From contig MCFE01000201.1 of the NCBI GenBank assembly GCA_002104905.1, positions 62,001-126,000 on the forward strand: a DNA stretch of 64,000 nt, given 5' to 3'. The DNA comes from Basidiobolus meristosporus CBS 931.73. Lineage: Eukaryota; Fungi; Basidiobolomycota. A program made the translations under genes and the position numbers. This document shows, one piece after another, positions 4,375 through 46,100 of this stretch; within the stretch, counting starts at the first letter, position 1, and the number at the start of each line of letters is the position of its first letter. Under the pieces are notes generated by a model. It was given only the letters and a program-made list of their open reading frames with translations. It was not told where the DNA came from and did no database searches.

Positions 4375-5736
4375 TTATGCCTCACATGGATCATTATCAT
4401 TGGAATGAAGTGAGTTTTTTAATGTGAGCGAAGATTCATCAAGTCTACGTTGTTGTTCGCTGGTACCGTTGTTGCTCGTATGGGATTCGGAGGCTGGAGT
4501 CTCCGTATTGACTGATCGTATTTCAGTATCTTGGGCAATATGAGACCGTTCGGTGCTCATCGCGGACTGGAATGATAGCTCTTCCTGTGCCTCTCGCTTG
4601 GCCTGTTTTTCGTGGCGCTCACGTTCCTCACGTTCTTGCTCTTCGATAATGCTTTGACGAATCGCCTCCATGACCATCATTTCCTCAAGATCCCCACCTA
4701 GTTGGTCTATATATGCTCCATGGTCTCGCCGTCTATTTGAATGCCTGTTACTATTAGAAACTGCTTCCCCTGATAGTATGCGGGCTGCATTGGCTATCGT
4801 ATGAGATTGCGTTTGGAGTTTCTGGAAATAATCAGGGCGAATTTCGTCTAAGAATGCCTGTGAGCAACATGAAAATGTGAGCATTAAAATATTCCCAGCA
4901 TAGTTACCGCTTGTGACAACATCCGGATGCTTATAGTCAATTGCTTTCCTACGATGCTCCTCTTCATTCTCAGTGCGTGTGTTGAGATGTCGATCTGGCA
5001 TGGTAGGTCTCTAGAAAACAGCGAATTCATTACCAGTACGGCAAATGCACTTTGTACGTAGAGAAATACCAGCTCGGTTGGTATCTTGTGCGAGGTATCG
5101 TGGGTCTCATCGGGTGCTTCAAGGTAATACATCACATCCTTGGGCGGCTTGTAAAGGACTCCAAAATGGGGGCGTACGCAAAAAGGGCACCTATTCACGA
5201 AGAGGATTTAAGGGTATTTTTGAGGAATCACATTTGCGTCCTACACCATCAAAGCAAATGAAAAGGATACACAGCAGGTGTACCGGTGGCTTCAGGTCGT
5301 TTGATCTGAACAAAACATTCGGTACAGATCGGTTGCTCGCAGCACCTTGAGTAGTTGATGTTTCGAGGATAATACTATAAAATAGAGCGTTAATAAAGTT
5401 ACAAGACGATAGGTATCTACTCCTTCCTACCAAAAAACATATAGGACACTCCACCGCCCCACGATATAAGTCTGTTAAGGTCAGTCTAGCTGAGCTGTTT
5501 CTTGACCTCACAGAGCTGCTTCGACGTTTTGTTCGGTTTCGCTGGCTATCCGTGGCTGCTACTTTTAGAAACTCGAGGTCGGGCTGACCTTTGTAGAATG
5601 GAGACAGCCGGCGGTCCTGTATCAACTTCCTTACTGCTTTATGGTCGAAATCTTGAGGTGCAGAGTAAATCCCGTGAGGTTGGAAGCCCCCTCCATCTAC
5701 ACTCTCCTCTTCCTTTTTGGTATTTACGTTGCCCAT
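4375..5736 (-). CDS. SIP5: Sip5-family RING-like protein (spliced; one U12 GT-AG intron)
   Basis: MGN start; [32 protein letters not shown]; [33 protein letters not shown]...CPFCVRP; C-terminal [14 protein letters not shown]; exons joined by hand. Confidence 0.82.
5191..5270 (-). other. U12-type GT-AG intron in SIP5 (80 nt)
   Basis: Donor GTATCCTTTT, branch-like ACCCTTAAAT about 15 nt before the AG; removal gives PAV-CPFCVRP. Confidence 0.8.
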
Positions 5737-6380
5737 CACCGCAAGTTTGCTGTATTGGCACAGAGGCGAGGCTGACGGTAACTGTGTGTTAGAAGTGTTT
5801 GCTAGTGAGGTGGAATTGGGCCTTTGAAGTGCTTCGATGTACAGTTCCAGTCGATCGAAGGAATCTTTACAATGCCAATGATGTGAGGCAACTGTGGAAA
5901 ATTATGGGATTTGTGGGTAAGGCTGTATTTATAATCTTCTAATTCATCGGTCACTCCCATCCTCCATCCCCAAAATGACCACCCACTGACGATTTAGAAA
6001 CCAGCGATCATGTGAATAGAGCTATTTGCTCAATATGTATTAATTGATTCCACTTTATTTATTAGGCAGGTAAATCTGGGTCACATCTATCATCTGACGG
6101 TCGGTGATGTTGATCTACTTGAACTAGATTTCGGTCCCAAGTTCATCGACTTCATCTGATTGCCTGGCCACTTGGCAGTAGCTAACTATACAATCGACAA
6201 AGCGGTTAGCTCGAAGCAGATTAGGGTTGCAAAACCACTGGGTGTAAATTGCAGGGAGATGTGAATAGCGTTTAATGAAATATCTCCCGAAAGAAAATGA
6301 ACAGCGTATCTGTGTGGGTCGGTGGATTATATGATCAAATGATATGCAAATGTCCCCATGCATTCTGGGGTGTTTGGAGT

Positions 6381-7181
6381 CTAACTCATAGATTGCTTAG
6401 GCTTTAGCCATTCTTGAGGGAAAGCAAGGTTAACCTTGGGCTGGGGCTTAGTTTGCAATGGAATGTCTGCGAATGTATCCGAGGGATCCTGTAAAGCGAT
6501 TTAGTGAGTACACCTCTGGGTTGCGGAACAGCTTCATAAATACCTTGGAATATTCAAGTAGTTTGTCCAGCAAGTCGGAGGCATGCTTGTAGTTCTGTTC
6601 GCGAAGACGGTACTTTTCGCAAGAAATCTTAATCTCGTTTTTGCCGGGATGGTAGCGAGGGCCACAAAGCAAGAGAAGTTTGTGCTTTTGAGCGGCATCA
6701 AGCGAGAGCTCGTCGACGTTGACAGTCAAGACAACCTTGCGAGCATTGGGGTGTTCTTCGCCGAAGTACTCAGTGCTCTTGTAGGCGACAATTTTGCCGA
6801 CTGATTTAGGTGGAACAAAGGGTTTTTGGAATTCTGAAAGGAAGCACTAGGTTAAATTTCGAGAAGATAAGGGTTACATTGCTTCTGTGCTCGCTAGTAA
6901 ACGGGCGGATACTTACTGGCAAGTTGAGGAAGTTCATATTGGGCTTTTTTCAAGTACGATCTCACGTCACGGATGTTCTCGAGCATGTTGTGTCCAAACC
7001 AGGTATGATCGTTGAAGTCATAATCCGGAAGATCACCAACATCCTGCTCGGGAAGTTTGTTACCAGCTCCGGGTTTGGCGCGAGCGAGAACAGCCGGTGT
7101 CATAGAAATATGACGCTTGACCACAGTGGTGGCGCCAACTTTGTATAGTTGAACGAGAGGAGTTTTTGTGAGGTTACTCAT
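6381..7181 (-). CDS. RSM24: Mitochondrial small-subunit ribosomal protein Rsm24/mS35 (MRP-S28 domain), 2 introns
   Basis: Presequence-like N-terminus; DLPDYDFNDHTWFGHNMLENIRDVRSYLKKAQYELPQL; HKLLLLCGPRY..IKISCEKY..QNYKHASDLLDKL; DTFADIPL. Confidence 0.85.
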
Positions 7182-7971
7182 TTATGCCAGTATTCTGTAT
7201 TCACCAAAAGCAGAATTCAAAGTTAAGAGCGGGTGGCCAAAATACAAGCTTTGACTGGTGAATTTCAGTACTACTGTGGAGCTTCATCGAAAAATGGGAT
7301 TGGCAGGGAAATATCTGCCCAACATGGGGAGAAAATCTCATGGATAGGGATGATGCCTCTTGATACCGAATGGGGTATGGTCCATCTGGCGAACCCCATT
7401 TTCGTGATCTCTCATTAAGGGCATGATAGCTAAACAAGTTTTGGGTATTTGGCAATTAAAGTACAGCTCAAATCTCCTTGCTGCTGTACATAATTCCATC
7501 GGCCAACCAAGACTAAACATTGCCCAGGCTTGCACAAATACGGCCGGGTAAAGGTTTTATGATTGCAGAATGTATACACCAGGTGCGGGCGCAAGATAAA
7601 GTCTTAATATATAAATTTATGTATACATATCCTTAAAAGCGCGGTTGGAGGTTAGGAATACATGAGGAAGTGAATATTGTGACGATTGTTTGGGAGTTAT
7701 GTGGCAATGCTCTGGTACTGGGAATCCATTTATTGCCGATAAATCATCCCAAACAAATCCAACACAATCGTTATATAGTTCGGGAAAATAAGTTCTAATA
7801 TGGCGAGTAGGGAAGCATGAAACCGCATATCTACATATATACCGTGGTGGTTATCTGGCTTTCTGGTAGCACTGGTTGACTGTTAGCTTTCACTACTGCA
7901 CAGGTCTTCTGTCCCTCCACTAAAGCCCTCGTTTAGCAAAGCCATTACGTTAATCTCAGAGTACTTTTGGC

Positions 7972-8000
7972 TATACATATATATATATATATATATACAT
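7972..8000. repeat. (TA)n microsatellite upstream of the cyclin gene
   Basis: About 10 consecutive TA units visible. Confidence 0.9.
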
Positions 8001-8087
8001 AGATACTATAGCTGTAGGCTTATTGTTGTGACATTGTCCAGATAACTGAGCCCAAGTTACGAATTGTTTCCTTGAAGTTATCAAGTC

Positions 8088-9069
8088 ATGATTGAACAAC
8101 CTACCTCCACTTTGGCCCAAAACATCCTGTCCCGATATTTTCGCCATTCCTCTACCTCTACCTCTTTCGACCCTGACTCAAAGACAAGCTGTGTAGCTTC
8201 TAGTACAACCAGTCGCTCAACCAAAACCGTAAAACCTGATAACTTACAAGATTCAGCATATCACCTTAGACGTCACTTGATAGGTAAACTTATTTGTTCT
8301 AGCTACCGAAAGGCCAGGCTCTGCAGAAATTCACCATAGATATGTATCCCTCTAGAAACTACTGCCAAGTTCGTAAACTGCTTATTTCAGTGTGGAAGAC
8401 CTAAATCAAAAGAACCAGACGAGCTTCCCAGACTAACCGACTTCATCTATCGTCTTTTACGTCGGACGAACCTATCCAACAACAACCTTTTGACCGCTCT
8501 GATTTACCTCATTCGACTCAAACAACGGCACCCAGGTTGCAAAGGGGCGTACGGCTCAGGGCATCGGCTGTTTTTGGCAGCCCTGATCTGTGCCAACAAG
8601 TATCTCCATGATGATGCTTATCACAATAAATCCTGGGTAATCGTGACGAACGGGCTATTCAACCTGGATGAAATCAATCAAATGGAATCCGAATTGCTGT
8701 TCTATTTGAACTTCAAACTAGTGGTCACCAAGAAACAATGGCTCGACTTTCTAATGCTGTTAGAGCCCAAAGTTCAAAAATGCTGGGCCCGCCACGGTTC
8801 TGTCGGCCCAAGTAACTGCCTTCTCGACGCTTGTACACTGAACATTGACTCCCCTCTAGGAAATCTAACCGATGGGAACGGTACGGCCCTTTATCCTTCT
8901 TCCAAGATTCCCGTACTAAGAGTTTGTCTTTGTAGCAGCTGGAGAGACGCAAACCTTGGCCATCTCAAAGCGATCTAAGCTTGACACGGTCATGGAGAGC
9001 TTGGACTTGGCTTTGTTGAGTGGAGGCAAAGAGCGACCTTCCAGCATTACTGGCTTTCCACTCGTGTAA
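8088..9069 (+). CDS. Pcl/Pho80-family cyclin (about 2 introns)
   Basis: LPRLTDFIYRLLRRT..LLTALIYLIRLK..HRLFLAALICANKYLHDDAYHNKSW..EINQMESELLFYLNFKL; the 3' exon is inferred. Confidence 0.88.
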
Positions 9070-9573
9070 GAGATCATATCCCTGAAGAAATGAGCACGCC
9101 ACCTCCACGTACAATACCGCCCAGCGTAAGCTGAGCCTGACTATAGTGCTATCATTTCTATCATATCACCCTAGGAATATGGGGTTCAGGCCCCACTATT
9201 CGATTGACTGTAAATGTGAATCAACAAGCAAATGCTCTAACCATTTTTGTAATAGAAGCGCATCAACATATAGATGTTTTCTAGGAGTGTATATAAATGC
9301 CACCTCAGTATTTAACAAAGAAATTAAATATAAACCAATTTCTCACAACCATGCTTACAGAAGCAGCTATATTTTAGTGGAGTACAGTGTTTGACATCGA
9401 CGTACGGAGCTTGCGTGGACCCGTGTCGCGCTGCCATCAGCTTATATTTACTTCACAAATACTATCCAAGATTGACATGATACGAATACGCTATAGAGCA
9501 CCGTGGTGCTTTACTCAGAGACTCTTGCCACTTTTGGATTGCGGCGATAATCATCTTTGGCTACTGCGCCGGA

Positions 9574-10556
9574 TCATTGATACTTTCGCTCACTGCCGCT
9601 CTTGGCTTCCCGCCTCTGCTGTGCAATGTCGTAGAACAGAGAGCCGTCGTACATTTTTCTGATCTGCTCCTTGTGAATCAGACCATCAGTCTGGACCAGT
9701 AAGTAAAGGGCGCCCCACTCAAAGAAGGCGGCCGACCTGATGTTTCTCTAGTTAAGATCTCCATAAGCAAGAACAGTAAAAGCGTTGCATCATACCATCC
9801 AAAGGGGTCGCCTGCATTTCTTGCTCCTTTCAGCATATCAGTCATCTCCCAGAAGTTTAGCGCATTCCGCCTGTTCAGATCGTACTTGCTAAACATCTCC
9901 TCAAACTTCTGGGGGACGAATCGACCCTAAAACCGGGGTCATTAGAGCCTACCAGGGGTGAAGAAACTTGCGCAGCGTACCTCGGTATCGTAGACTTCCT
10001 GGTCGGAGCCATGCTTGCTTTTGTGGATGTTTTTGGTGTATATTTTGAAGAATGGGCTGGGGATGAATGAATCTTGCGTAGGGTAGGCCAGCGCGCCATG
10101 GATAATGGCTACTGCGACCAAGCTGAAAATGAGATTGAATCCCAATTCGCGGAAACCTATTTTGCCAATACATTAATGTCCACCCAAGAGGCAACCCACC
10201 CAGAGCGCTTACCAAGGAATGTTCCGTAGGGTGTTATCACTCCATCTCCGTTTCTAAGACGAAAGCCGGTGAGATATCCGTCACGATACATAAGCTATGC
10301 TACAACCACTCCTACTTGTCAAAGAAATCAACATGCTGTTGAAGCACAGTGCGCGGGGGAATATTCTTGGAGCTAGTGCCGTCAGGCTTCTCTTTGCTGG
10401 CTGCGATGGAGACACGAGGCTGGCCTTGGAGAGGGTTGGTGAGCTTGAATGGAGTGTTTGTATACTGGAATTACCTGGGTTGTCCAGAGTCTTTTCGAGA
10501 TCGCTAGGAAGGGGTCGTTGACGCACCACGTCTGGAAGTGTGTTGTTGATCGCCAT
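9574..10556 (-). CDS. Caleosin/peroxygenase (about 5 introns)
   Basis: VLQQHVDFFDKNGDGVITP (EF hand), GFRELGFNL, proline-knot-like AYPTQDSFIPSPFFKIY, NIHKSKHGSD..YDTEGRFVPQKFEEMFSKYD, EWGALYLL. Confidence 0.92.
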
Positions 10557-13101
10557 CTAGTATCAGTTGGGTTGGTGCTGTGTTCAGGAGAAAGCGAAAT
10601 ACTTTATAGTAGGTTGGAGGTTGGACGTAAGCTAGCCTCATCCAATTTGAGGATCTTCACATGTGAAAGTCATGATCCATTTCCATATAGCAAAGTTGGA
10701 TTAACTGGCATCTAACACAAAGACCAGTCATTAGATGAAATCATTGCATCATCCTCATTCCCTGATAGAGTGCACTTTTTGAAACCAATCACCCAATTGT
10801 CAGTCCAGCTGAACGTGTATTCAACAATTCGGCCCACCTCAAGCCTGGGTTCAGTCCATCACAGTCGTGTCGAGATGACGACTAACCACTCGATTCGGAC
10901 TTTGATAGTCTACAGACCAGCGTCCAAATACCTCCCACTTTATGTTGCCGCCCTAACACAACGTCATAGGGCGGCAAATATTGAAAATATCAATCATAAT
11001 AAAGCTTACACTATGTCCCCAGATTTAGTTGGTTTTGAGTAACCAACAAGGTTTCCCCATCACTCCACATCAATTCCCTGGCTGGAGTCCCGGGGAGAAT
11101 TGTCAGACTAGCATCTCACGTTTCTTGCTTATGGTGCTGGATTTGCCTACTATTGATGTTAAGCTTTCCGGAATATCACATGAATACCTATATTTAGTTG
11201 TCGCAGAGCTGATTAATGAGATCATTACTCCTGTCTATTGGGCCACTCAACATTCATTTGTTTAGAAATTTTCATGGGATATGTCTGATCAAAAGTTTGT
11301 GTAAAAGATACTGACTTTTCACCTTTCATTTTTAGTGCAATCGTTGGATTTATGATATTTGCTGATGACTATAGTTCAAATGACTTACTTTTGATAGTGC
11401 TGACTATATTTCTCTGGACTCCCACCTATACTACAAGCCCGTATAAGTGATACAGATCGAATGGGATTCTATTACTCATTTGCGTTGGGCCTAGAATATG
11501 TTGCAAGATTCTGGGGAGTATTGGAAGTGATACGGAGAACTAGAAGAATTGCATGATATTCATTTGCTTATTTATCGAGTTTAATTCAAGTACTTACACT
11601 TTTTAGAAGAACTTTGTAGAGCTAATGAAATGCGTGTTGTCTAATAAAGGTCACCGGATGTGGTGTGTATAACTTGCAGCTTTTCAATGATTGTGAAAAT
11701 CAAGATGACTTCCAGACCTTCACTAACTCAAAGAACTAGCCGATATCCTACGGACTAGATCTTGAGTAAATAATTCATAGTTTAGCAATAAACTTAATAG
11801 AGTCTTAAGGTGTATGAATAATTTAGGTGCCACCTCAGTTTATACAACAGAATAGTTGCATATCTTATGCTTCTACTCAACTAATTATTGGACATTGTAC
11901 TATGAACTAATGATTGGGTTGATGGGATGATAGCCAATACTTGAAGCTGGTGATATCCTGAAAGTAAGCATCATTCTCAAACTAGTTCAAATAGCTCCTA
12001 CCATTTCCACCATTGCAAATGATCAGTCCAGCACATAAATCTTCGTATTGTTGTTAACTTGTACTTACAGATGAAGATTGATATTGACCTAGCCACTTGG
12101 ACCATAGCTGATGAATTTTATTATTTTCCGATCCAAACTCTTTAGAAGTACAAATATCACTTCCACACTCAATAAACCATTAAGTGATTCGGAGCACAAG
12201 TAGATAATGTGGTTCTCACTTGATGATGTATTGAATGTAAAAGATGTATATACATGAAGGTTAAAAATACACCAACATTGAAGAATATATATTAAGCTAA
12301 AACTGACTCATCTACTAGATCTCCCAATCATTTCCAATACCCCCAGATTTCCCGCAGAAAACTTGAAAACCAAACAAAATGCTGTGCCCAGAGCATGAAG
12401 ATTCTTAAGGTTCCTCAAAGGTCCTCAAACTTTGCACACATGCTCTTAGGACCTTCCTAACCATATTACAAGCGCTAAATTACGTGAAAACCACATGATC
12501 TACCGGTTTCAATAATCACTTCCAATAGCTCGAAACTCTCACCGTATTATTATCTAAAGGCTTGATTATTTTAACCGAGCTTTTCATAACTCATGGGGGA
12601 AATATTTTGGGGGTTCTAGTAAGCTCTGTTCAAAGTTTTCGGCCTTTTGGGTAAGTTGCAATATACGTTCAAAGTCAATCCCAAATCACTATTCCAGCTG
12701 CTCTCTAGTCCTAGCCTAGATAGCATCCCTAGAGCATCATGTTTAGCCTACCCACACAGGTAATCTCGGTAACAAGTAGGGACAAGATTGCTACTGCCCA
12801 GGCCTGTTGGGATCTTATGGCAGCTGGCCAAATTTGGAGGTCATACTCTACCCATGGATCCAGCTACAATTCCCATTGAGTCCTACCATACTCTATTCTA
12901 TCCACTTCCTCTCTGCGAACAACATTGGAACACAAGACAACCCAACGCCAACGAAATATCGCTGATATGATGGGTAGGCGTGAGTGTTCCTCGGAACATT
13001 AAAGGTGGGCCTGGTGAGTCTGACAAGAGGTGATTACGGTTTATTCGGGAGTACAAATGATTAGGTTATACATGTAAAAGGAGGGGTCAATTTACGAACA
13101 C

Positions 13102-14171
13102 TCAAAGTTCTTTCTTGGCCGCTTTGGCCTTGGCAAGGGCTTGCTTGGCGCGGAACTTCTTGTACTTGAGGTCAGTACCGAACAGGTGATCCCAGAAACG
13201 GAACGAGGACGCGTAGTTGTTGACGAAGAACTGGTGGTGGTAATCATGATGGTCGGAGCCTGGGGGGATGGAAACTCTCGGGTTAGCTTAATGAATTGGG
13301 GTTTCAGCCACTAGGCTCCCTTACCGCTCCAAATTGGGCACCAATGACGCATCGACCAGGGGAAGTCGTATCCAGAATGGGAGTCTACCGCTTGCAACAG
13401 GCGACTGGCCATCCAGATAAGTACAGTGATAACATGGAGATCCCCGGTGCATGAAATCCAGATAAGGGGTCCTCCAAAGGTGCCCATGGCCAGAAGGATC
13501 GTCTCTAGAGGATGGGCATACTCCGCAGCCTGTAAACGTTTAGGTAAGCAGCGGGACTCCCGGGTCACGATAATGCCATACATACCAAGCCAAAAGGTGC
13601 ACTGAATTCGTGGTGGACCTTGTGAATGTACTTGTAGAAAAAGCTCCAATGGAAAAGACGGTGGGCCCAGTAATGATAGAAATCCTCGAACAAGAAGAAC
13701 CAGAAAACCTGGATCACGATTTGCATGCTAGACAACTCAGGTTAGTCCGGAACGGCTGGTCAGCAGTACGTCGCTTACTTACAGGCTTGGGAACGGATCA
13801 GTCACCTTCATTCCAAGCATCTGCGTGCCGGGATGAAACGCAAGGATCATTGGAAGCTGGATGAAATGGTTCTGAATAAGGACGCCCTTCAGGCATTTCC
13901 AACGTTGGGCACTTGTCACTGGCTTGTTCTAGTCGTTGGTTAGCATAGCCACTATACAGAATACTCTAGGTGTGAACGAGCTTACATCTTGAATCTTGTA
14001 CTTGTCCATGGCGGGGATGTGCTCAGCGATCCAAAAAGGAACGTAGCGACCATAATAAAAGAGTTGATGACTAACAAATGTGATGGCAGCAAGAACTATA
14101 GCGTGGTTTCTTCCTTCAAAGAGGGACAGCCACCAAGACTCAATCATTGAGGGTTGGTATTCCATGCTCAT
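13102..14171 (-). CDS. ERG25: C-4 methylsterol oxidase (4 introns)
   Basis: His boxes [28 protein letters not shown]; AAEYAHPLE; [17 protein letters not shown]. Confidence 0.93.
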
Positions 14172-18939: not shown

Positions 18940-20545
18940 ATGCGACTGCCAAGTGTCGCTGGGGTAGGAGTCAATTACTTTTATCTCTGCTTTAGTGTGT
19001 ATATTGTCAGGGCTTTACCAAGTCTCGGCCATCTTGATCCCCAGGACACATATCTAAAGCGGGATGGTAGAGTCATTCACATACATCCCTATGCCTTTCC
19101 CTATTGAAGGACAGCTCATGAAATTTTTCATTTAGTGGCATCTTTAACCGAGCAATGTGGGCCAGATATCTATTGTTTACCAAAATTCAACACCACGTGG
19201 ACGATGGGTAGTGTGGGCTTGCTACGGTGGAACTCCAATTACCCCACATTCAAAGTCCAAGGGCACGTGGACATTCGATTGTACGAAATGACCAACCCCC
19301 GAAAGCCAGTCAAAGAATGGCTGGATATCACCAACGACGAAGGATTATGGTCCGTAAAGCTGGATCATAGCAGTGGGATATTTCCCGAGTATTTCAAGCG
19401 TCCAAAAAACACGACAGTGGTCAGGAATTATCGCTTCTTGGTAACTGTCAAAGATGACTTAACTGAGGGGAGGCAGAAAGGCCCGATTTTTAATATAGAA
19501 GGTGAAGTTCTCAACCAATACCTCGGCATGTCAGTTTCGCTTCATTGAGTCTGACCCTAACATCTCCTAGATCCTCCTCCACCTGAGGAAGTAAACCCAA
19601 CCTCTGCAAACGCTTTGCATTTCGCCATACCTATAGCAAACCACTCGCTGCTGCTGCACCCAAGCAAGATTAATCAGAGTGCAACTGCAGCAGTGTCAGC
19701 CTCACCAACTGGTGCAACATCCACAGCAGCGTACCCTACTAACGAACCCAAAAAAACCTCTAATATCGAACTGATTCATACAAACTCTATTTTAAACGCG
19801 CGCCCAGATCAGAGCTCGCCCTTCGATTTGTCCCTCAACACGGTTATAGGGATCACGGCGAGTGTATTAGCAGGCCTAATACTTCTCATTGGATATCCTT
19901 TGCATACAGTGCTGAATCCCACTAGCAATTATCCCAAGTCTTTAGCCTTAACTCCACAACACTCTAACCTATTGCCTTGTGCGTCGATATAACAAAGCTA
20001 ATTATTCTGCCACAGTAAGAAAATGGAATCAGAAGAATGGGAAATACACTATGGCGGAGAGTGCTCAGCAACGAAACACTTGTGACTTCTCACGATACTC
20101 TGTATCCGGTTATACAAGCACAGACGCTTTTCTGCCAGTTAATGAACCCGAACATCAAGAGGCTGTATTTGACACAGCTAATCAACCAAGTCCATGCATA
20201 CTAGCGGCTTTACCCAGCAGTCTGGTATCGGATAGTCACTTATCACCTACGGATGAGCGATCGAAGCCAATGTCTTTATGCTTGACCGTCAAGGATGCTC
20301 AACTGATTGCAGACACATACCGAAGATTACTCCGGAAACCCAGTTGGAATGAAGACGATATAAAGGAGTTTGGAAAGAGAAATACATATACAGACGAGTT
20401 GATGAGAAGGGAGTTGGAGGCGGAAGGGAAGGGTGTTAAGCACGTGAATACCGCCCCTACTCTTGTGGTTGTGAATGAAGAGCAGAAGGTCGATCGTAGG
20501 AGTATGATGTCGATACGAGAGCTGGAAGAGTTACCCAATTCCTAA
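18940..20545 (+). CDS. Single-pass type I membrane protein of unknown function (signal peptide, Cys-containing ectodomain, S/T stalk, TM, cytosolic tail); contains a U12 AT-AC intron
   Basis: Exon 1 MRLPSVAG..LKRD joins ORF 19135; the full TM VIGITASVLAGLILLIGLTYCLVRRYNK is formed only after removing 19893-19962. Confidence 0.75.
19893..19962 (+). other. U12-type AT-AC intron (70 nt)
   Basis: Donor ATATCCTTTG, branch GCCTTAAC about 10 nt before the CAC acceptor; restores frame between ORFs 19615 and 19979. Confidence 0.9.
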
Positions 20546-20971
20546 CGATGGTTGCCGTATCTTTCACTCAGAAGAACGGTGATCTAAACTAGTTCACTCA
20601 CTTCCTGTGCTCAGGCTGTCATATAACATAATTTTTAATCGATCCTTCTTGGGGAGCTTCACTTGTCTTTTCTACACTATACACACTTTATTATTATTGA
20701 TCTTTGGAGCAAGCCTTTTTCTCGAATGTCGTCTTCTAGAGTAGACCAGCCGTTGTGAATACAAAGTGCATACTGTGCCCTAGAATAAACCTTGGTATAT
20801 TTTTGCGGATAGCCGACTATTTTGCTAAGGGGTTAATACCCCTGATGCGGCGGATACTTGGTCCGGTTTTGAACAATAAACGAACACCGAAAGAAACTTC
20901 CCACTTCATCACCGGTACGAAGAGGCTCATCTACGTGATATTAAGCGATAATTTTATTACAGATGTAGCTA

Positions 20972-22081
20972 TTATCTAAATTTCGAACCAAGTGATATTA
21001 AAAGGGCAGTTGTCAAAAAGCAGGCCGAGGCTTTCCCAGCGGAGCTCACTGGAGCGCTGATCTTCTCGTTTTCCTTATCATTAGGATCGCATTTCGGATC
21101 TTTACAAATGGGCTTTGTTGGCTTTCCTTCGCAAGTCTTCTCCATATACTCGGTGCCAGTGATTCTGATTCGATACGAGGATAGCTGTATGGGTAGATTC
21201 AGGTCGAAGTTCTTTGCCTCTAGCAGTCCGTACAAGTCATGAACTCTGTCAGATGAGGCAGGCCACACTTGATCAGGGAAGCAGCAAAGCAACTTCCAGC
21301 GGGTTTTTAGAAACCTGTCTAAATACTCAGCCTCATCCTTGTACGGACCAACCAGTTTGATAATGCTCCTCAGACTCATGCCGTTATCTGCTTCCCAACC
21401 ATGCTGAATAGCTGTATCGTAGAAGATAGCCTTTCCAAGATTGGACTTCACCCCCACATCCGCAGCCAGCCCCATCGCGGGCAGAAAATACATAGTATCT
21501 GCCAGTTTGTCCTGGGCACCCCGGAACTTCTCATCACACGACTCCAGCTTCCAGGCCTGGTCAAACCCGTTTAGACCAACAATATCGTTGTTTGCGCTGC
21601 CACAGTCAAGCCGATTGCTTACTCTCTCCAGCGCAGCGTTGAACGGGGAAAAACTGGTATTGGTGCCCTTGCTTTTCTCATAATCCTCCACTACTATTAA
21701 CGCGTCGCCAGTTCCAGTGGTGAACCCGATGCTTCCGCAAGTATAGCCTCGACCGTCACCAATATCTCGGCACTGGCCATACTCAATGGTGGTGGTTCCG
21801 TGTTCAAAGCTGTTTGTAATAACCTGGGCAATCCTCTTCGCAGTTTGCGGCATACTCGTCGCATATTTGGCATATATAGAATCATTGGTTGAATTCCTGG
21901 AGCATACGGTGGCAAGCATGTGCCTTCCAGCGAATAGTTGAAACCTTTGAAAAGTAAACAATTGGCAATTCGCACCTGTTATAGCAAATTCCCCTTTACA
22001 GTACTGGAAGGTTTCTTGGGCCGAGGTGGGCCGATACACAGTTGCGCAGCAGAAAAATGAGAGGAGGAAAAATCTACGCAT
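20972..22081 (-). CDS. Secreted GH46 chitosanase with possible GPI signal, intronless
   Basis: ITNSFEHG..RDIGDGRGYTCGSIGFTTGTGD (GH46 catalytic Glu and Asp), YDTAIQHG, YLDRFLKTR; signal peptide; hydrophobic C-terminus. Confidence 0.9.
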   Translation of the reverse strand: MRRFFLLSFFCCATVYRPTSAQETFQYCKGEFAITGANCQLFTFQRFQLFAGRHMLATVCSRNSTNDSIYAKYATSMPQTAKRIAQVITNSFEHGTTTIEYGQCRDIGDGRGYTCGSIGFTTGTGDALIVVEDYEKSKGTNTSFSPFNAALERVSNRLDCGSANNDIVGLNGFDQAWKLESCDEKFRGAQDKLADTMYFLPAMGLAADVGVKSNLGKAIFYDTAIQHGWEADNGMSLRSIIKLVGPYKDEAEYLDRFLKTRWKLLCCFPDQVWPASSDRVHDLYGLLEAKNFDLNLPIQLSSYRIRITGTEYMEKTCEGKPTKPICKDPKCDPNDKENEKISAPVSSAGKASACFLTTALLISLGSKFR

Positions 22082-27519: not shown

Positions 27520-29469
27520 ATTGATTCATAGAAAGGCCTTGAGCTCCTGTGGCTCAATATTATTCCCCCCGGAGGCATCGCGCATCCGTCGATTATGAAT
27601 AGCGTTTATCTCTTCTTTTTATATCCAGAGTATAGCCAATCTGAATTTAGGAAACCTACATATTGATAAAGGAAAATTTGTGAAAAATAAGTCACATTGT
27701 TGCAACCAAGACAACCAGCATACTGCCGAGAAATCCTAAGCCATCCTGAATGATATTGATTTCAACACTGATTGATCCCCCATAATGTTGAACGATCTGG
27801 TTGGAGGATGCCTATGAATATTGGCAAGCGCTTGATACTATACAACTCTGCTGGGTGAGTTCCACACGTTCATCGGCTGCAGGTCGCCTATCCAGGATGT
27901 TGTTTGCTCACACTCGATGGACAAATGCAGTGGGCAGCCGAGGAACTTTCGGCCGGAGAAAGCGTGGAAGCCCCACGATGTTAGCATGTTCAGCTATCAC
28001 AAAACTTCAGGTTGGTGGGTGGAGGATATAGCGTCGCTTCAATAGGCTGGGACAAACGGCGATCGAGTATGTCGCCAGACTGGCCCTGTGTCTATCTGAT
28101 GTATACCCGCCGGCCGTAAACCTGGCAACTGGTCCCGATTACAGGTCGCATTGCTGGTGTAGCGCATGGGGCTATGCTTTTGCACGTAGATGAAGCTACT
28201 TTGACTCCGTTGTAATACCCTACTTCAGCCCAATGGGACTGAGCCACTTTACGCTATCTGGGAGACATCTCGTCTCCTGGCTTTAATCGCTGCTGTGATC
28301 ATGCTAGATAAGATCTTCAGCGACTCGCCTAGCCTGGCCAATAAGCATACCGTTTCTACTCACTCAATTTGTTTCATCTAGAGTACCCAGCATGACCAGT
28401 GGAAGACGTGGAGAGTATGCCACTTGACTACTCACCGGGCCAATCTCTGCACCCTCTTGCCTGCTGGGGTAGGCGATCTCGATAATGGAATAGTAACATT
28501 ATTGACTGCGGGACGTTTGACGAAGCAATGGTCCATCTGAGGATCAGCAATGATTGGCTGGTGGGTGTCTTCGTGGATCCCATTTTAAATGGATTGATTA
28601 ATCAGGATGACACATTGCGGAATGAGTGCCGTTCAGATGCAAATACCTGGTATATGTTGATGATTGTGCGCCCAGATTCGTTTGGAATTTACACCAATTT
28701 GAAAGGTCAGCATCAGTTGTGCTGGGATTGCTTGCAGCTGCATCCGGATGGCTCAATCCTTTCAATTTGCTCACCACCAAAGTTGGATTTAACTCCAGCG
28801 AATATCCCTGAAGCTCGCGAATCACCATTGGCCTCCTTATTCGTTCACTCTCAGTTTAAGATTGGGATTCAGGATCTAAGGTGACTGAGCTGTTGAATCT
28901 TTTGGTTCGTTGATACCGTGTGGGTTTGGTGGTTCAACAGCGGATTATTGGACTGCAATTTTCAGAAACGCGTCACTTGACGAATCACCTGATGAGAAAT
29001 GCATTCTGCTTATCTTCCCATTATTCAGTCCCTATCCTCTGATTACAGCTCAGTTTTCGTTATTTAGACGTTGTCTTAAGGGTATCAACAACTCTTCAGG
29101 AATAAACACTCGCAAGGCTTCTCGAACTTGCATGGCTCAGCCCAGTCTCAATATCCTTGTATTTCCAACTCTATAACTATAAGCATCGTTCTCTGTCTCC
29201 TTCGATTCCACCCCTGTTCTTCATAACCTTTGTCGTAAGCTTATTTTGCAGGAACTTCCTTGATTGAAAAGCTCCCTGTACTCTAAACAACAGCCAATTT
29301 CCGGGTTCTCTTTACCCCCTACTTGACTACTTGGTCTCCCCTTTGGCTACCTTCACACCAGATATAGCTGAGTCATCAGAGCTGCAGGTGTGAATCCCTC
29401 CACTCTCCTTGTCCAACAAACCTCGTCTCCACCACATCGTATCTTTCTTTTCCGTCACTTCAGCTCTCT

Positions 29470-35622: not shown

Positions 35623-35843
35623 ATCCCTAGAACTCATGCACAGTTGAATGTTGGACGTAAAATACTTTCTATGTTGTAGCACGTAGCCGTTAAAACCATA
35701 CTTTAATTACATTGTATATTCTGCACAATATCGTACTGTACTTACTACTCCTACAATCGCTCACTTGCATAATCTGAATAAACTTCACTGTTGCAGCTGT
35801 AACACTTCAGACCAAGTAAGAGCTGTGTCCGTCTACCACTTGT

Positions 35844-37123
35844 TCAGAGGGTGAGAAACCTCCCATCCATTTCATATATAATTCCATTCACGGAGAGCTA
35901 AAGGGATTTGAGGTATTATATGCCGTTAGCTGGCTGTGCAACTTGGGACACAAATCGTCAAAACTATTTACATTATTGACTGCAACTTGGAGTCGGGATT
36001 TATCGAACAAAACAAACTCATGAATCAGTTGGTCCATAGTTCTGCCATTGCCATTCGCCTTGCGAATGAAAGCCTCAATCTCACTCTCCACAGAATCTAT
36101 TGGAATACGGTCAGGTTTGGCAAGGATGATGACCAAATGAACGGAGATTTACCACCCAATCCAATGGTTTCAACACTGAACTCATCCATGTCTTCACCTT
36201 CGTCTTCGTACTGACTAGAACCCAACAATTTGAAAGGTGACACCTTCGGTTCGTCTATAGGGTTTTCTTGTGACATTCTAACCGGAGTTTGCATCTCATG
36301 CGTCGTTGAATGAATTTTTTGAGGTGACAGAGAATAACGGCCTTCACCGGCTCTGCGAATTGGTGAAGGGGGAAACTTTCCGGCGAAGTAGTTGTCCCGA
36401 TACAATTTTACCAGTTCCAAAGAGCGTAAAACTTCATATACGGGGTCTTCCTGTATTTCCCAACTTCATATCACTTAGTATATGAGGAATCCAGAGAACA
36501 ACCGTAAAAGGTAAAGTTACCCAGTACAATCTATCCACCGCCCCCACTCTCCCTCTGGAAGCTCTGAGGTGGATAATCCTTGCTCGGTGAAGTAGCTACC
36601 TAAGTCTTGTGACTTCAGTAACCCAATCACCTCCAACTGATCGCCCAGTACGAGATTTCTTACACGTTGCAAAGGGAAGCTTTCGGAGTTGTTGAGTAGA
36701 AGTGGTATAATCCCAGTGCCATCGTCTTGAAAAACAGAAATGAATTGATATGCTGGAAACTGCGCTAGGGGAGGACAAGCATACCCAAAAAGCACAAAGT
36801 TTTGATAGCTCCAGATTGTTGCGCTTCTGGGACAGAATTCCTGGGACTTTGGCTGGCATCAACGTGACTCTGAAGGACTAGTATACCCGTAAACCTTAAT
36901 TGAGTATCTTATTAACACGAAAGGCAACTTTGTCTGGTAAACTCGACAGGAAACCGCTGAATGCTCACCTAACCTTATCAAACCCAAATTTAGGGAAGCC
37001 AGTGTAGAAGAGTTTCTCACCCAAACTGTATTTCGCCGATAATAAATCTTGTGCGAAGAGTATTCGATGGATACGGTGGTCTGTCTTACTCTGCTGTGAC
37101 TTGGTTCTCTTGGGTTTAAACAT
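35844..37123 (-). CDS. STN1: OB-fold + winged-helix protein, Stn1-like (CST complex); exon structure partly uncertain
   Basis: RFTGILV..LDDGTGIIPL..LGDQLEVIG (OB fold); EDPVYEVLRSLELVKLYR resembles the Stn1 post-OB helix; inferred C-terminal LSVNGIIYE winged-helix motif. Confidence 0.6.
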
Positions 37124-37393
37124 AGTCTTGCGTATACTACCGATTCATCAGACAATATATAACGAACTCATATGCTGAATATATGCATCAGAATCTCTTC
37201 CAATCAGATACCCTGTTATGGGGAGAGCAAATTCAGCCCGACGATTGCGGAAGAGTGAATCCCTGTTTAGTGTGTGGTAACTCTACAATTTATTGGGTGC
37301 ATGGGGTATTCTACATTTCCGGAGATCATGTCAATGGCTCCTATCAAAAAGGTGAATTGCAAGTCACTCTAGGGTATAATGCTAACATCGTGC

Positions 37394-38302
37394 TTAAAGT
37401 TCCCAGACACTGCCAACATCAGAATGAAGGTCTTCGTGAGGTTGCCACTTAACAATTGCCTCAAGAACTGCGCGACCGCCCTTCATTTCCAAAGCAGGTA
37501 CGATGCTATGATCGATAAACTCATTGGAGGCACGATCAGCAAATACCATCATGGTGGAACCAACGCTGATACTCTTTTTGGCGGTCTTTTGGGCGAGTGG
37601 GGCGGTGGTGGAGCAATTGGCCAAATGGTAAAGAATGAAGTTCTCCATTTCAAGTGAGACTGCGTTGGGAAGCTCCTTATCAATTCTATCGAAGAGATCC
37701 TCATTGTGATCCACAAAATTCTCATCAATACGACCTTGTGAGGAATAGAAGGAATCAGCGTTGATGTTCAGTCCTTTGTGGACCTTCTCCTCGCCAAATA
37801 CAGTGGTTAGCTCATTTTCAAGAAGTGCAACCACATCCGAGTCAGCGGGGGCAGGCTTAGTGATCATGTAAGGTAGCAGGCCCTCATTATCAGGCAGGAA
37901 GTAGTCGTAGTTTCTGAAAATGCCGACTGCGCTATCAGGGACAATAAAGTTGCCTACATGGGCACCCTTGAGGGAGCCACATGAGCCAAAGCGGATCATA
38001 CACATTGGACCGTCAACGACTGCTCTAACTTCACGAACGAAGAAATCGACCAAAGCATTGCCCATACCGATGGCAATCACGGTAACCGGGACTCCCTTGT
38101 AGCGACCGGTGGCTGTGTAAAAGTTGCGATGGGAGGTGTACTCGAAGACTGGGGGGACGGGGTCAAAGAGCTTAGCCATGCGTTTGGCGCGGGCGTGGTC
38201 GCCAACTGTGATAACTCTGTTGGCACACTCACCACGCTTCAACTCGACGTGGTAAGTTCGACCATCGGAGGTCATAGGGAAGTTGGCGTTAGAGAAGACC
38301 AT
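37394..38302 (-). CDS. Uridine/purine nucleoside phosphorylase (PNP_UDP_1), intronless, 302 aa
   Basis: RVITVGDHARA, GRYKGVPVTVIAIGMG, IRFGSCG, ADSFYSSQGR, LEME. Confidence 0.9.
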   Translation of the reverse strand: MVFSNANFPMTSDGRTYHVELKRGECANRVITVGDHARAKRMAKLFDPVPPVFEYTSHRNFYTATGRYKGVPVTVIAIGMGNALVDFFVREVRAVVDGPMCMIRFGSCGSLKGAHVGNFIVPDSAVGIFRNYDYFLPDNEGLLPYMITKPAPADSDVVALLENELTTVFGEEKVHKGLNINADSFYSSQGRIDENFVDHNEDLFDRIDKELPNAVSLEMENFILYHLANCSTTAPLAQKTAKKSISVGSTMMVFADRASNEFIDHSIVPALEMKGGRAVLEAIVKWQPHEDLHSDVGSVWEL

Positions 38303-40276
38303 TGCTGAGGTATAGAAACTAGGTTGAGAGTATCCAATGAATAAGAAGTGCTTTTTATAACTTGAATGATAAATTTGAATGGCAGGGAATGACTGAAGGA
38401 GATTTTTAAACTCAGGGGTTGGAATGAATTTATTATACCGTTAAGTAAATTCCTAATCACAATGATTCCTAATCTGGCTCCACAGGCTCACCAATCATTC
38501 GTTGTGAATTCAGAGCTTTCTGGAACTCTAGGGAAGTGTCTGAAATACCACTCTCAAATTCTAGAGAAACATGCCTTTTATGGTGCGTCAAGAAACAATT
38601 CTAAACAGAAAGTTGGATGAGCCCATCAAATGTGTAGGAGTGAGTACGACACTGGTTTAATTGGAAGCGACTTGGTCCCCAATTTGGTATATGATTTATT
38701 TCACAAGAGTCGGGTCTAAGAAAGAGCAGTGATACTTACCCAAGGACGAATTAATGACCGTCGGGATTCTGCGAAACAGGAAATTTGCGATTGAGCTCGA
38801 ATCTTCATTTGCCACATATGCAATGAAGGCAGAAGCAATTAAGGCCGTCTAGACATTTTTGAGCTACTCACTCATGTGAAAGCCCTTGGTTCATGCTGTT
38901 GTTGGCTACTTCCTCGGACTGAAGATGTGGGACCTCGCCACATGGTTTGCTGATTTGTCTTCCAATGAACTGGGGCCGGATTATGACTTGGTGGATTTTC
39001 CCGATTCATCATGGTGGCTGCATATGCATACGAGCATAACGTTAATAAATGCAATCGGCCCTGAACATACACTAGACCCCACATAAGGAACAAATCTTCC
39101 AAAAGCTCCTGGTAGCCCGAATCCATCGGTTTTGAAATCCAGTCTACTTGACAAACCTATTTATCATCGTACTGCCTGAATCATATTTCGGTATCTGTTA
39201 TGGATCGTGGTATTCAGTAACACAATCCCACTTTCTGCGCCAGATATACAGTCTGGATATTCAGTAATGTCGATCGTACCAACCTTGCATTTTTGGGGCT
39301 CAGTCAAACTGACATAGGTAGCAAGGATGCAGTGGAATGTTGCATTTCAAACTGTACCAGCATCGTGTACATTTTGAATATGTTTGTAGTACAAAGCGCT
39401 GAGCTGAAGTCATCCAATGCCGTAAGAATTCGTGACTAGAAAAGCCGGTGGACCTGCTGTCGTAGACCTAGTCCACTGATTAGTCTATAGGGTTTCCATA
39501 TTAGTATTTTACGTCACCCTCAAGAATATCCTCAAATCGCACTCCTGCCATCAGGTTTAATTAATCTTTAGTAGTGTGAGAATATCTGGCTAGTTCTGGT
39601 AACAGTGGCAGCTACTGTTCCTCATCGAGTTTCTTGGCTGTAATATTTCCAGTATCTGCAGCAAGTTCATTGAACTAATGGCGTACGTACTTCGTAGTTT
39701 ATTAACACGCTGATTACTCAATTGAGGAGTGATGCCAAATATTGATCGGGTATTCATAACGCGAATATAGTCTATAGATAGTAGCAACGTTCCTAATTTT
39801 TACCATTTCCAATAGTGTTACAAACTTGGGTAAATGTATGGATACTGTGGCGCATTAGGCCAATCCTATCTCGTAACTTGACCCCTTGAAGACAGACAAT
39901 CCTTCAGCAGAGGTGAACAGGTTTTCATAGAATCCTCTGATAAATGTTAGAAATCCTTTGGAGTTATGACGAGTGCTTGACCAATATTCATCGGATTTAT
40001 TATATTATTCGTTGTTTACAAAAACATGATTGCATGAAAAGGTTTATCTGAGTGTTTTACGGCCTGGAATTCGGCTGCTTACTTCTGTCGCCCAACTGGC
40101 CAAGCTCACCATGCGTAGCATGCTATGATACTTTGCGTTCAAATACATTTTCGCGTTACGTGAAGTCAACGGTTCACCATCCTCTTTCTTCCAAAATCAA
40201 AGAGCTGAACTCTCTTTCTATATAAGCTGATACGAGGAGATTATAATCCATAGAGTCGCAAGGACATATGATACGT

Positions 40277-41582
<1,306 letters not shown>

Positions 41583-43175
41583 TCTGAGAATCAAGGAAAA
41601 TGGAATACGAGGATATGTAAAAAGATATTTAAGTGACTTTCTTATGAGGTGGTGGTGATCTATTTATATACAAATCAGGAATCTTGGCGTTGACATAATC
41701 GTATAATGAGCATTCATATAGTGAAATTAGGATCAAGGCTTAGATAACTGATCACAACGTAGCAATGTATTAGTACATAATAGAAAACTTACCCTTAACA
41801 ATCACTGAGCCCCACATCCGATTATTATGCACTTGGTTGTTTTATCGGATGATCCCTCTCCGAGTCATTCGTGTAGTCGAAAATAGCCCAGAGAATGAAT
41901 GGGCGTATTATAGTAAGCATATATGTTTAATATCTATCGGAAACGAAAACTGCCCTCAAATGAACTACAAACCTGATATATCATATATGGAATGCAAACA
42001 CAACAAATGATGGAATTTACTTGGTTCGGGCATCTCTTGTTTCAACATTCATCCCATGGATAGTTCGATCATTTAATGTTGATAAACATCGTGCTGAAAC
42101 TGGGCTTGCGGTCAAATAAAGTACCTCTTACGGAGAGGTGGTTAGTAGACTCCATGCTTCTATATGAAGATCGGACCAAGATCATATGAGCGAACATGCA
42201 TGACGAAAGCGCTCTTCGAGGCTTAGGGTTACCGTGTGTGTGTTTAATCATGACGTACATAGCACGCATTCGCCCAATATAGATTGAGTTTGAACTCACT
42301 TGCTGTCTGAGTCATCTAGAAATAGATCTGTATGAATAATCATTTGCAAGCAAGCACACAATGCATGTGGTTGAGATGAAGAATTCTAAATCGGACATTA
42401 CTCCGTTACTTGTTAAGGGTAAGCTGATTTTCGCCACTGGATTTGATCTAATGCTTAGGGTTTTCCTCGCCCATGACTCAGCGGGTCAACAAATCATCGG
42501 TGTGAGTGGTGATTTCAGGTACTATGCGACCCGAATTGATCAGAGCCTTCGCCTGCGAAGAATGCAGTAGAATCATTCGCACAAAAAAGCCTTGCGCAAA
42601 ATAGGAGTGCCTTCCAAACGTGTTCAATGAGAAAAGCCTTCGGTTCGGTGACTGTCGAGTGTGATGAGTAGGAGCTTTGTGATCAACACACTACAGGGAA
42701 TTTGCTTTGTTCCTTGGCCCAAATGGGTGTCCACAGCACTAAGCCTATCGCATCCCTTAGTCAGTGAACTCATTTACTATGAAACATATACCGATTTGTG
42801 CGCAAGGCTCAGCTAGCATCATAATCAGTAGTCGCTTCATTTACGCATACCGTGTATTGCCGCAGACATTCATCGGATTCTGATTAGCCGTGTTATGATT
42901 AATTGCTATCTGTAAACATGCTATTCAAGAAATATTCAATATCGAGCTTTCGCCATCCATAATAACAAACAAATACACTATTTGGAGCCGTTTGATGAAA
43001 AGGGACAGAACCAAAGCTTCTTCTTCTCCCTTTGCCCTTAACTGACTGCTAAAAATTTGGTTTGCTTCTTACTTGGGGCATAATCTGTTTGGCCCCGGAA
43101 TTTCAGTCTAATTCATATATCTATCTTGGAGGCACTTGAAGTTTAGCTCCTTGATCTCGACTATAATATTTCTGA

Positions 43176-46100
43176 ATGGCTGGCGCACCCAATCCAGATA
43201 TTTCTGAAGATCTTGACACAGAGAAACGACCTAGCCGAATTCCGATCTTTAGTTGCCGGATTGTAAATATAGACTTCGAGCTTGTTCGTCCAGGTCCATA
43301 TGATATCCAGCGTACCAATGTACACCCTGATATTTCCCTCGAAAAAGTTCCGGTGATTCGAATTTTCGGAAGCACCGAAAATGGACATAAGACCTGTATT
43401 CACATACACCAAGTAAGTATGGCATATTCACACGTTGAACACCTACGCAACACGCTCACTCTCTATAAGGCTTTCCCATATTTTTATATAGAATATAAAG
43501 GCGATTTGAAACTTGATACCTGTAGGTTTCCATTACAATAATATTATCAAGCGTGCATCACTAACCTGAATTAGTGAGGAATTTTTGTATACAGTTGGCT
43601 ACAAGTATTAACCATGCCGTTGCTGTATCGTTGAACAAAGATCCAAATTTGAAAGTGAAGAATCAGTATGTCCTTGCTGTATTACCTATCAAAGGAGTTC
43701 CTTTCTATGGATACTACAAGGGGCATAGATGCTTTCTGAAAATATATTTATATCCTTATGGTCTATTGTGCCTGTCTTTAAGCAATATGCAGAATTCACC
43801 CTTAACCTAAAGTATACAGTGAACCCAAACATTGTTTCCAGAGTTGCTGAGCTACTGCAAATGGGTGCCATAATGGGTACTATCTTTCAGCCATACGACG
43901 CACACATCCCTTTCCTGCTTCAATTTTTTGTGGATTACAATCTTTATGGGATGAATTATATTCATTTGGATGATATGGTGCCTAGGGTAAAATCCCATGG
44001 TCAGTATATTGCAGATGTTGCCTGCTATGCACAGACACTAACTATGCATTACATGTACACAGAAAAACAGCCGTGGGATGATTCCGTTATGGCCAAAGAA
44101 ACTGTGTGCGAGATGGAGGTGGATACCGTTGTAGGAAATATCCTTTATTTGATGTTGCTCCTCACATTACACACATACCGCACACGTGCTTTGATATCCT
44201 TGATTCGAAGTTTTACATATAGTAAACAAGGACTTTATAGCGGAAAGAGATATCCACACTGTAGACTCTGAGTTATATGACGACCAGGTGAATGCTCGAT
44301 TAGTGCATTCACTTCATGCCTTATGGCAGGTAATATTCGCTCCAAATCCCTTGCATAATTACGTAACACTTCATATTGACAATGTACAAGGATGAGGAAG
44401 GCCGACGCAAGGAGCGCTTGTTGCCGACCGATGCGAAATCCCAGGCAGAGGAGAGAGGCTACTCTCCTTGGAACAACGAAAGTGCTTTGAGGGAAACGAT
44501 CCATAGCTTGATAGAAAAAAACCCGGGAGTTGGGCGTCCTCCAGCAGAGCAATCTGAAAATCTGAATACCGATGTGTTAGATAGATTGATGACTGCCTAT
44601 CAAGCCATTGATGGGCTATTCAAAGATTCTATTTTTCTGGGGGCAGATGTGGAGCCATCTCAAAAGTATATGGTGGCCTTTCTTTGATGCTATCCCAAAT
44701 TACGTTGTCTAACCAATCGACTGTTTCCAGTTCATCTCCTGCCGAGGTGTTGGTTGATAATGTTGTAGTTAGTCAAAGATACAGTTCGCAAAACGTAAGT
44801 AGACACATCATTCCTTGCTTAAATGGCTCCCTAAAGCGCTCACATCTATAAAGGAGAATTGTGACGACGTGAGCAACGTAGATCCAGAAATTCCACAGGA
44901 GGAAGAGAGAGATGAAGATAGCTCGCATGATGACGAGTTCTGGGAGCAGTTCAATGACGAAGATTTTTTTAATGTTAACGTGGATCATCAGCTAGAAGCC
45001 TTGCACCAAAATATCAATCAACCCGAACAATCCTCGACAATCCAGCCGGTCCAAGCAGCCCAATGTTTGTCGAACCACGAGAATGATAAGTCTCCTGGGG
45101 TTGCATCCAAGCCCAATCATTTTCTGAACCAAGAGGCTCTTCGTGGATTATCTATCTCAGATGAGCCGGCTCCGATCAACTTTGCTACCTGTCCTGTTTC
45201 ACGTAGAAAGTCTCCTAATCAGAATGATGATTCCGGCTGTTCGCTTCCTATCCGTAGAATTCCTCAATTTGATGGTCCTGGAGACCTATTCCCGCCAAAC
45301 TACTCAACACTGATGCCTGATAAGAAAGGAAGCCGGACTCCCATGATGGGGTCAGGTATGTTGTAATATGTAATTCAGGTGTTGACACCTGCTAAGAAAT
45401 CCAACTGAATCTTGGTAGCATCGCGTAAATTTTGTCGAATTGTTGACAAATCCCACAGTAGCAATCGAAAACTATTATATCAGGCTAAGGTAGACTAATG
45501 ACGCACTTGTTTTTGAGGGAATTGTTCTGAATCTCACGAGTAATATAGAACCGAGAGTCCAACCAAAAAACACCCAAGGCCGCGCTCACCTCTACAGTCT
45601 CAAGGATGCCATCTTCGTCAGAATCTCCCTCTAAAAGGAAAGCTCGAATGTTTTACTCCACTTCAAGAAAGCCAGTTGAAGAAACCCGACTACACAATCG
45701 CACATTCACAGAACCTAGACGTCGTATAAATTTTCAGAAGTACTTCATTGACGAGGATGATTATGAGTATGACCGAATAGAAAGCACGTTTACCTCAGGT
45801 ATTTACACCAAAGCTAAACCGAGGAAATGTCCTAATACTGACAAGCTTTGATCAAGCATCTAGCCATAGTACGGCTCGGATGGTAATGGACTGTGTAGAA
45901 ATACCAAGCAGAAGTTATGCTGATGACGAATTCTTCACGAATTACGGGTCTAACAGCAGTAATTTAATATCTAAGAATATTGTTGACATTGAGAATTATG
46001 CATCAAGTGTAGACACGTATTCCAAGATATCTATCGTCGAGTCTACCCAAGCAAGAGCTTCGCAACAAACATCGCGCAAGGTGTCGAATATTCTCACTAA

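Follow-up and report, generated by a model that had tools for sequence, protein, structure and literature searches.

A probable local cluster of U12-type introns in three genes of the fungus Basidiobolus meristosporus

Fungi were long believed to have almost no minor splicing, an assumption to which Basidiobolus forms the published exception. Larue & Roy 2023, who classified annotated introns with intronIC, reported for Basidiobolus meristosporus the highest fungal minor-intron density so far (0.554%, n=249; PMC10639083), and Girardini et al. 2024 found 237 minor introns (0.5%) in the same species, together with high-confidence genes for U11, U12 and U6atac and a putative divergent U4atac (PMC11347168). 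The richness of this fungus in minor introns and the activity of its system are already known and published, so the novelty implied by a preliminary description of the DNA studied here does not hold; individual introns or local clusters are neither listed nor discussed in PMC10639083 and PMC11347168. We analyzed a window of 64,000 nucleotides (nt) of B. meristosporus CBS 931.73 (contig MCFE01000201.1, positions 62,001 to 126,000), in which four introns, here called a to d, resemble minor (U12-type) introns. The window is 100% identical to these positions of assembly GCA_002104905.1, and its aspartic protease shares 99% identity with a protein of the same strain. We consider it highly probable that all four are genuine U12-type introns, situated in three unrelated genes, and that their high share in the window reflects a local cluster. 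They come from the same species and belong to the same intron class as the catalogued ones; both surveys use annotated introns only, and the two introns in REV3 (c and d) fall outside them. Our analysis adds concrete cases that can be checked, namely an AT-AC intron of REV3 whose splicing is verified in RNA and another, in a different gene, that two Basidiobolus species have in common.

The four introns share the sequence features of the minor class (Table 1). The donor [AG]TATCCTT[TA] lies exactly at the frame-restoring boundary in 4/4, and each has a branch site of the TCCTTRAY type about 10-20 nt before its 3' end, where a polypyrimidine tract is absent. The branch sites are CCTTAAA in a, CCTTAAC in both b and c, and CCTTGAT in d, with the branch A 17, 11, 12 and 13 nt from the 3' end, respectively. 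The terminal dinucleotides are AT-AC in three and GT-AG in one. Excision of each intron regains a long open frame, and retention of any of them leads to stops or a frameshift. Their phases (2, 2, 2 and 1) agree with the known bias of U12 introns away from phase 0. The hosts are a zinc-finger gene (a), a gene for a Mid2-domain membrane protein (b) and REV3 (c and d). The preliminary description had reported four introns in three genes with the full U12 signature, three of them AT-AC, each with an RTATCCTT donor and a CCTTRA branch near the acceptor. This account was accurate: all four lie where it had placed them, restore the frame and carry the motifs, b, c and d are AT-AC, and the measured branch distance is 11-17 nt.

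Table 1. Positions and properties of the introns, host genes and neighboring features (positions without a locus name refer to the window; L004 is a further B. meristosporus locus and L009 a B. ranarum contig)
Feature	Position	Strand	Ends	Length (nt)	Phase	Sequence at the ends	Remarks
Intron a	5270->5191	-	GT-AG	80	2	GTATCCTTT...CCCTTAAAT	in zinc-finger gene
Intron b	19893-19962	+	AT-AC	70	2	ATATCCTTT...GCCTTAACT	in gene 2
Intron c	43750-43817	+	AT-AC	68	2	ATATCCTTA...CCCTTAACC	in REV3
Intron d	44138-44216	+	AT-AC	79	1	ATATCCTTT...ATCCTTGAT	in REV3
Mid2-domain single-pass membrane protein gene ("gene 2")	~19288-20592	+					host of intron b
REV3 gene (DNA polymerase zeta catalytic subunit)	43176-51938	+					~25 introns; host of introns c and d
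Candidate fifth U12 signature	29151-29281	+		131		ATATCCTTG ... TTCCTTGAT	branch 18 nt from AC
Strong U12 intron	L004 11973-12045	-	AT-AC	73	0	ATATCCTTT...TTCCTTAAC	11 nt to AC
Doubtful U12 candidate	L004 18720-18798						short flanking frames, poorly modeled gene
Gene 2 orthologue of B. ranarum	L009 3719-5388	+					annotated as two genes
Intron b orthologue of B. ranarum	L009 4720-4802		AT-AC				syntenic contig
Tandem repeat	58400-59060	-					period ~155 nt
LINE-like endonuclease/reverse-transcriptase gene	61390-63910						adjoins the tandem repeat
GH46 (chitosanase) gene	20972-22081	-					intronless
GH46 gene of B. ranarum	L009 5990-6874	-					kept in synteny

Set beside the canonical AT-AC and GT-AG U12 introns of animals and plants, in which the branch lies 10-15 nt from the 3' end, those of Basidiobolus have an identical donor (/RTATCCTT) and branch (TCCTTRAY) consensus, a branch similarly close to the 3' end, a lack of polypyrimidine tracts and a phase bias away from 0, but they are much shorter (68-80 nt), similar in length to the U2 introns of the same genome. 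Four of five strong Basidiobolus cases are AT-AC, a tiny sample to compare with a share of ~26% in human (PMC10639083). Physarum polycephalum (cited in PMC10639083) is, like Basidiobolus, a lineage with minor introns far above the usual <0.5%; its gain is massive and genome-wide, whereas in Basidiobolus the high share is local.

We asked how often such signatures arise by chance. Each copy of RTATCCTT was taken as a candidate donor, and a branch and an acceptor were then sought downstream. The motif itself has 18 copies in the window where 5.2 are expected, a raw count inflated by three copies in a tandem repeat at 58.4-59.1 kb and by one that is the branch region of intron d. When introns up to 600 nt were allowed, full signatures numbered 8 against 4.6 expected, which is not significant, and the test was therefore limited to short introns with flanking open frames. 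Our test of choice counted complete signatures of <=150 nt, the size range of introns in this genome, using 500 dinucleotide shuffles. It found 5 such signatures where 0.148 were expected; a further requirement of at least 30 open codons on each side left 4, with 0.008 expected. An origin of these motifs as chance matches in non-intronic sequence would fit the long-intron count and the nine further RTATCCTT sites in the window that are not introns. The excess of short signatures speaks against it, and RNA, homology and cross-species evidence, presented below, already refutes it for introns b, c and d, leaving a chance origin with a negligible probability.

The most direct evidence concerns intron d. 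REV3 was identified by Pfam matches to POL3_N and DNA_pol_B_exo1 on exon pieces and by PDB matches to yeast Rev3, and its gene calls include REV3_N, POL3_N, DNA_pol_B and zf-C4pol. We compared the gene with run X3, which is listed as 'DNA?' under another organism code but is transcript-like: its contigs are short and of uneven depth, are >=99% identical to the window and show eight precise joints. An X3 contig joins 44137->44217, skipping exactly the 79 nt of intron d with its AT..AC ends, at a depth of 37 and with 76 nt on the shorter side of the joint. Precise excision of intron d is thus observed directly, and the AT-AC joint supports the earlier claim that this lineage has an active minor-intron system. 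The other seven joints in REV3 are GT..AG, with the donors GTAATA, GTATAT, GTAAGT, GTATGT, GTAGAC, GTATTT and GTATAT. RTATCCTT or CCTTRA is found in 0/7 of these RNA-verified U2 introns, which marks the two intron classes as distinct. We also observed that one X3 contig ends at 44062, no more than 3 nt from a predicted U2 acceptor; such an end would be expected if spliced and retained forms branched in the assembly graph.

For intron c, which lies in the N-terminal domain of REV3, the evidence is homology. In the alignment with yeast Rev3, the match of the upstream exon ends at residue 161 and that of the downstream exon begins at residue 164, and the spliced junction yields exactly the two residues in between, giving a gapless fit. 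Genomic contigs from a related species are colinear across the intron with a 2-nt insertion at 43810, inside it, which would shift the frame if this segment were coding. The protein P0122 lacks the REV3 N-terminus and provided no second comparison. Pfam searches with short exon pieces left the junctions of introns a, b and d unplaced.

Intron c also bears on the alternative that the U2 spliceosome excises one or more of the four introns, c through a GT at 43761 and an AG at 43819, or a through U1/U2. The GT-AG pair at c is in frame and CTTAAC could act as a U2 branch; introns a, b and c are without RNA coverage, and U12-like donors on GT-AG introns can be hybrid cases (PMC11347168). However, the donor that this alternative uses at c, GTCTAT, is unlike 7/7 RNA-verified U2 donors, all of which start with GTA, and splicing there would insert the residues YPY into a protein that the U12 splice fits to yeast Rev3 without a gap. 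The public model that chose this pair is already wrong at the neighboring intron d, and both a and c combine perfect 8-9 nt U12 donors with CCTTAA branches at the correct distance. We therefore regard U2 removal of any of the four as unlikely and treat all of them as U12-type.

Conservation provides independent evidence for intron b. Its host, gene 2, is a member of a Basidiobolus family of Mid2-domain single-pass membrane proteins, and the intron sits inside the transmembrane helix. Splicing rebuilds this helix and places RR after it, the arrangement seen in the paralogues P0245 and P0248-P0251. On a syntenic contig of B. ranarum, the orthologous intron retains the ATTGG/ATATCCTTT donor, the CCTTAACTC branch and the AC/TCT end unchanged, while its interior has diverged, with 3-nt and 10-nt indels, so that the distance from branch to AC is 21 nt in B. 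ranarum and 11 nt in B. meristosporus. In the flanking exons the differences between the species fall mostly at third codon positions. The donor, the branch and the end of intron b are thus under purifying selection, and the intron is older than the split between B. meristosporus and B. ranarum.

Intron a interrupts a zinc-finger motif directly before CPFC, in a gene that begins MGNVNTKK at 5736. It has a GTATCCTTT donor and an CCTTAAAT branch 17 nt from the AG end, and its support consists of frame restoration and these motifs. An atlas search for the identity of the host was uninformative; by its motif we take the gene to resemble SIP5, which could not be confirmed. Upstream lies a gene at 5772-7181 (-) that we presume to be mitochondrial ribosomal protein S35-like. 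The gene finder fused it with the zinc-finger gene, so models at this spot need RNA support. Frame, homology and conservation lead us to infer that a, b and c are excised as well.

By analogy with characterized U12 introns, a U11/U12 di-small nuclear ribonucleoprotein (di-snRNP) would recognize donor and branch cooperatively. The rigid donor /RTATCCTT would base-pair with U11, and the branch CCTTRAY, which is 11-17 nt away from a 3' end devoid of a polypyrimidine tract, with U12. Exchange of U11 for U4atac/U6atac.U5 would follow, and then catalysis. For introns a-d the motifs suggest this mechanism, and a dependence on minor snRNPs would be expected on the same grounds.

We next turn to how common such introns are. 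The preliminary description had counted ~70 introns in the window by hand and derived a minor share of 5-6%. A crude constrained gene finder gave 41-73 introns, which makes the hand count reasonable, although the finder is imprecise: in the RNA-covered part of REV3 it recovered 4/8 RNA joints exactly and predicted 9-10 introns where RNA shows 8. As an independent sample we used six loci (L003-L008) around paralogues of two unrelated genes, chosen regardless of U12 content and spanning ~110 kb, with ~37 called genes and ~77 introns (estimated as gene span minus coding sequence). Scanning them identified one strong and one doubtful U12 intron, both in L004. The window density per kb predicts ~7 in ~110 kb, compared to the 1-2 found, and is thus disfavored as a genome rate. 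Counted per intron, 1-2/77 (1.3-2.6%) has a P of ~0.35 to 0.07 under a rate of 0.55% and of ~0.07 to 0.19 under 5.7%, the latter a weak rejection.

A share of 5-6% is therefore fair for the window (4/~70) and does not describe the genome, for which the independent loci give 1-2/~77 and the published surveys 0.5-0.55%. The window was flagged for being extreme. About one window with four U12 introns is expected per genome at 0.55%, and a dozen or more at ~1.3%. REV3, with ~25 introns, alone contributes 2/4 of the U12 introns, and part of the local excess follows from an intron-rich gene having two. The 5-6% is most likely a local cluster rather than the genomic rate, which makes the caveat of the preliminary description, that its count may reflect local clustering, the better reading in light of the independent loci and surveys. 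The genome-wide share of minor introns is probably 0.5-2.5%.

The opposite view would take the window as typical, with ~5% U12 introns genome-wide and a Physarum-like expansion missed nearly wholly by annotation-based surveys. Consistent with it, both REV3 AT-AC introns are missing from public annotation, 4/5 strong U12 introns are AT-AC, the class that predictors miss, and the independent sample rejects 5.7% only weakly per intron. Against it stand the 1-2 candidates in ~110 kb of independent loci where ~7 were predicted, two independent surveys at 0.5-0.55%, the selection of the window as extreme, and the AT-AC intron of L004, which is compatible with an annotated product of 138 amino acids (aa), so that not all such introns are missed. 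A Physarum-like genome-wide share of several percent was not found, in a small sample that sets a loose upper bound, and we hold this view to be very improbable. A milder version, in which the true Basidiobolus complement is several-fold above 237-249 (at least 1.5%) and dominated by AT-AC introns, is a possibility that we raise tentatively. Such an under-count would follow if predictors swap AT-AC introns for nearby GT-AG introns or split genes at them. If it were true, no known lineage outside Amoebozoa would be richer in minor introns than Basidiobolus, which would then offer a practical fungal model of minor splicing.

Several points weigh against our reading of four genuine U12-type introns in a local cluster. 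RNA verifies one of the four (intron d). Since intron a is GT-AG, its minor class is assigned by motifs only, and intron c has the in-frame GT-AG alternative 43761-43819, chosen by the public model. Rfam detected no minor small nuclear RNA (snRNA) gene, either in the window or across 134 kb of other loci, and evidence for the machinery in this species therefore comes from published work. The independent loci form a small sample that firmly excludes neither 0.55% nor 5.7%, and several of them lie near contig ends and are gene-poor.

The AT-AC introns coincide with errors in public gene models. REV3 is annotated as two models, P0121 (833 aa, 43176-48607), named 'ribonuclease H-like protein, partial', and a 714 aa model from near 48982. 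At intron c, P0121 uses the GT-AG pair 43761-43819 with donor GTCTAT and so gains the residues YPY, for which the gapless yeast Rev3 alignment has no place. Farther on, it translates part of intron d (GN-ILYLMLLLTLHTYRTH-SELY) and removes 44186-44264 instead, an interval that includes the exon sequence IVNKDFIAERDIHTVD and conflicts with the RNA joint. A further 'intron' of P0121, 44673-46596 (1,924 nt), contains RNA-supported exons and is bogus. P0121 also reads through a probable U2 intron at ~44002-44064. In B. ranarum, the gene 2 orthologue is annotated as two genes (172 + 165 aa), and the unannotated gap between the two models holds the transmembrane exon and the AT-AC intron. These cases support the earlier claim that GT-AG predictors mis-annotate minor introns, P0121 being wrong at both c and d and gene 2 of B. 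ranarum being split. The documentation of public mis-annotation at AT-AC introns in both Basidiobolus species is new here.

Because the public model draws other GT-AG introns in REV3, the two AT-AC introns of this gene cannot be among the published counts, and mis-modeling of AT-AC introns makes annotation-based minor-intron counts lower bounds, a caveat raised by Larue & Roy themselves (PMC10639083). Annotation does not necessarily miss every AT-AC intron: removing the one in L004 yields exactly the annotated 138 aa, a product that 12 combinations of GT-AG introns alone yield as well, and is thus compatible with the public model. In the public REV3 protein some residues are invented and some conserved residues are missing, and the gene for a membrane protein is broken into two; users of the proteomes of both species and annotation-based minor-intron counts inherit these errors.

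We also considered whether these introns were retained or gained. In the atlas, the match of the 138-aa gene of L004 is 'Nuclear receptor 2C2-associated protein', with a score of 0.92 and 179 features in common. Human and mouse NR2C2AP also contains a minor intron of the AT-AC type (donor ATATCCTG, branch TTCCTTGAC; PMC6717393 supplement), which together with the NR2C2AP-like identity of the L004 gene suggests ancestral retention. The L004 intron may date back to the last ancestor that animals and fungi share, as judged from gene identity rather than intron position. In contrast to the gain in Physarum, at least one Basidiobolus U12 intron is in a gene that is also a minor-intron gene in mammals. 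REV3L is absent from the human and mouse minor-intron lists (PMC6717393 supplement), and the literature searched yielded no link between REV3L and minor introns; the REV3 introns may accordingly have been lost elsewhere or gained in Basidiobolus. The preliminary description had spoken of an expanded system. New gain of this kind was not shown, and for the L004 intron the NR2C2AP-like case points to retention.

A fifth complete signature in the window, at 29151-29281, has flanks of weak and ambiguous coding potential and may be an intron of an untranslated region or a chance match. Nine RTATCCTT sites were rejected as introns because they are without a usable branch or frame (7627, 14654, 18025, 54062, 61257, 54936, 41032, 17487 and 16206), the one at 41032 falling within an aspartic protease open reading frame (ORF). 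The repeat unit of the tandem repeat contains GTATCCTTAAAACCTGT(T/A)GGGGTATGG, and the three U12-donor look-alikes there are copies of the repeat and not introns. The array adjoins a gene resembling the endonuclease/reverse transcriptase of a long interspersed nuclear element (LINE). The branch region of intron d (44190-44201, GATATCCTTGATT) is a perfect look-alike of a 5' splice site (ATATCCTT). Because the core TCCTT is common to the U12 donor and branch consensus, simple donor scans count this intron twice.

Exact-product look-ups of single-exon ORFs in the window (aspartic protease, SUN-domain protein and glycoside hydrolase family 46, GH46) returned no match. The GH46 gene was recognized by Pfam (PF01374, E 3.5e-42) and is kept in synteny in B. 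ranarum. Glycoside hydrolase family 46 is mainly bacterial, and on the strength of this distribution the gene is a candidate for an old horizontal transfer.

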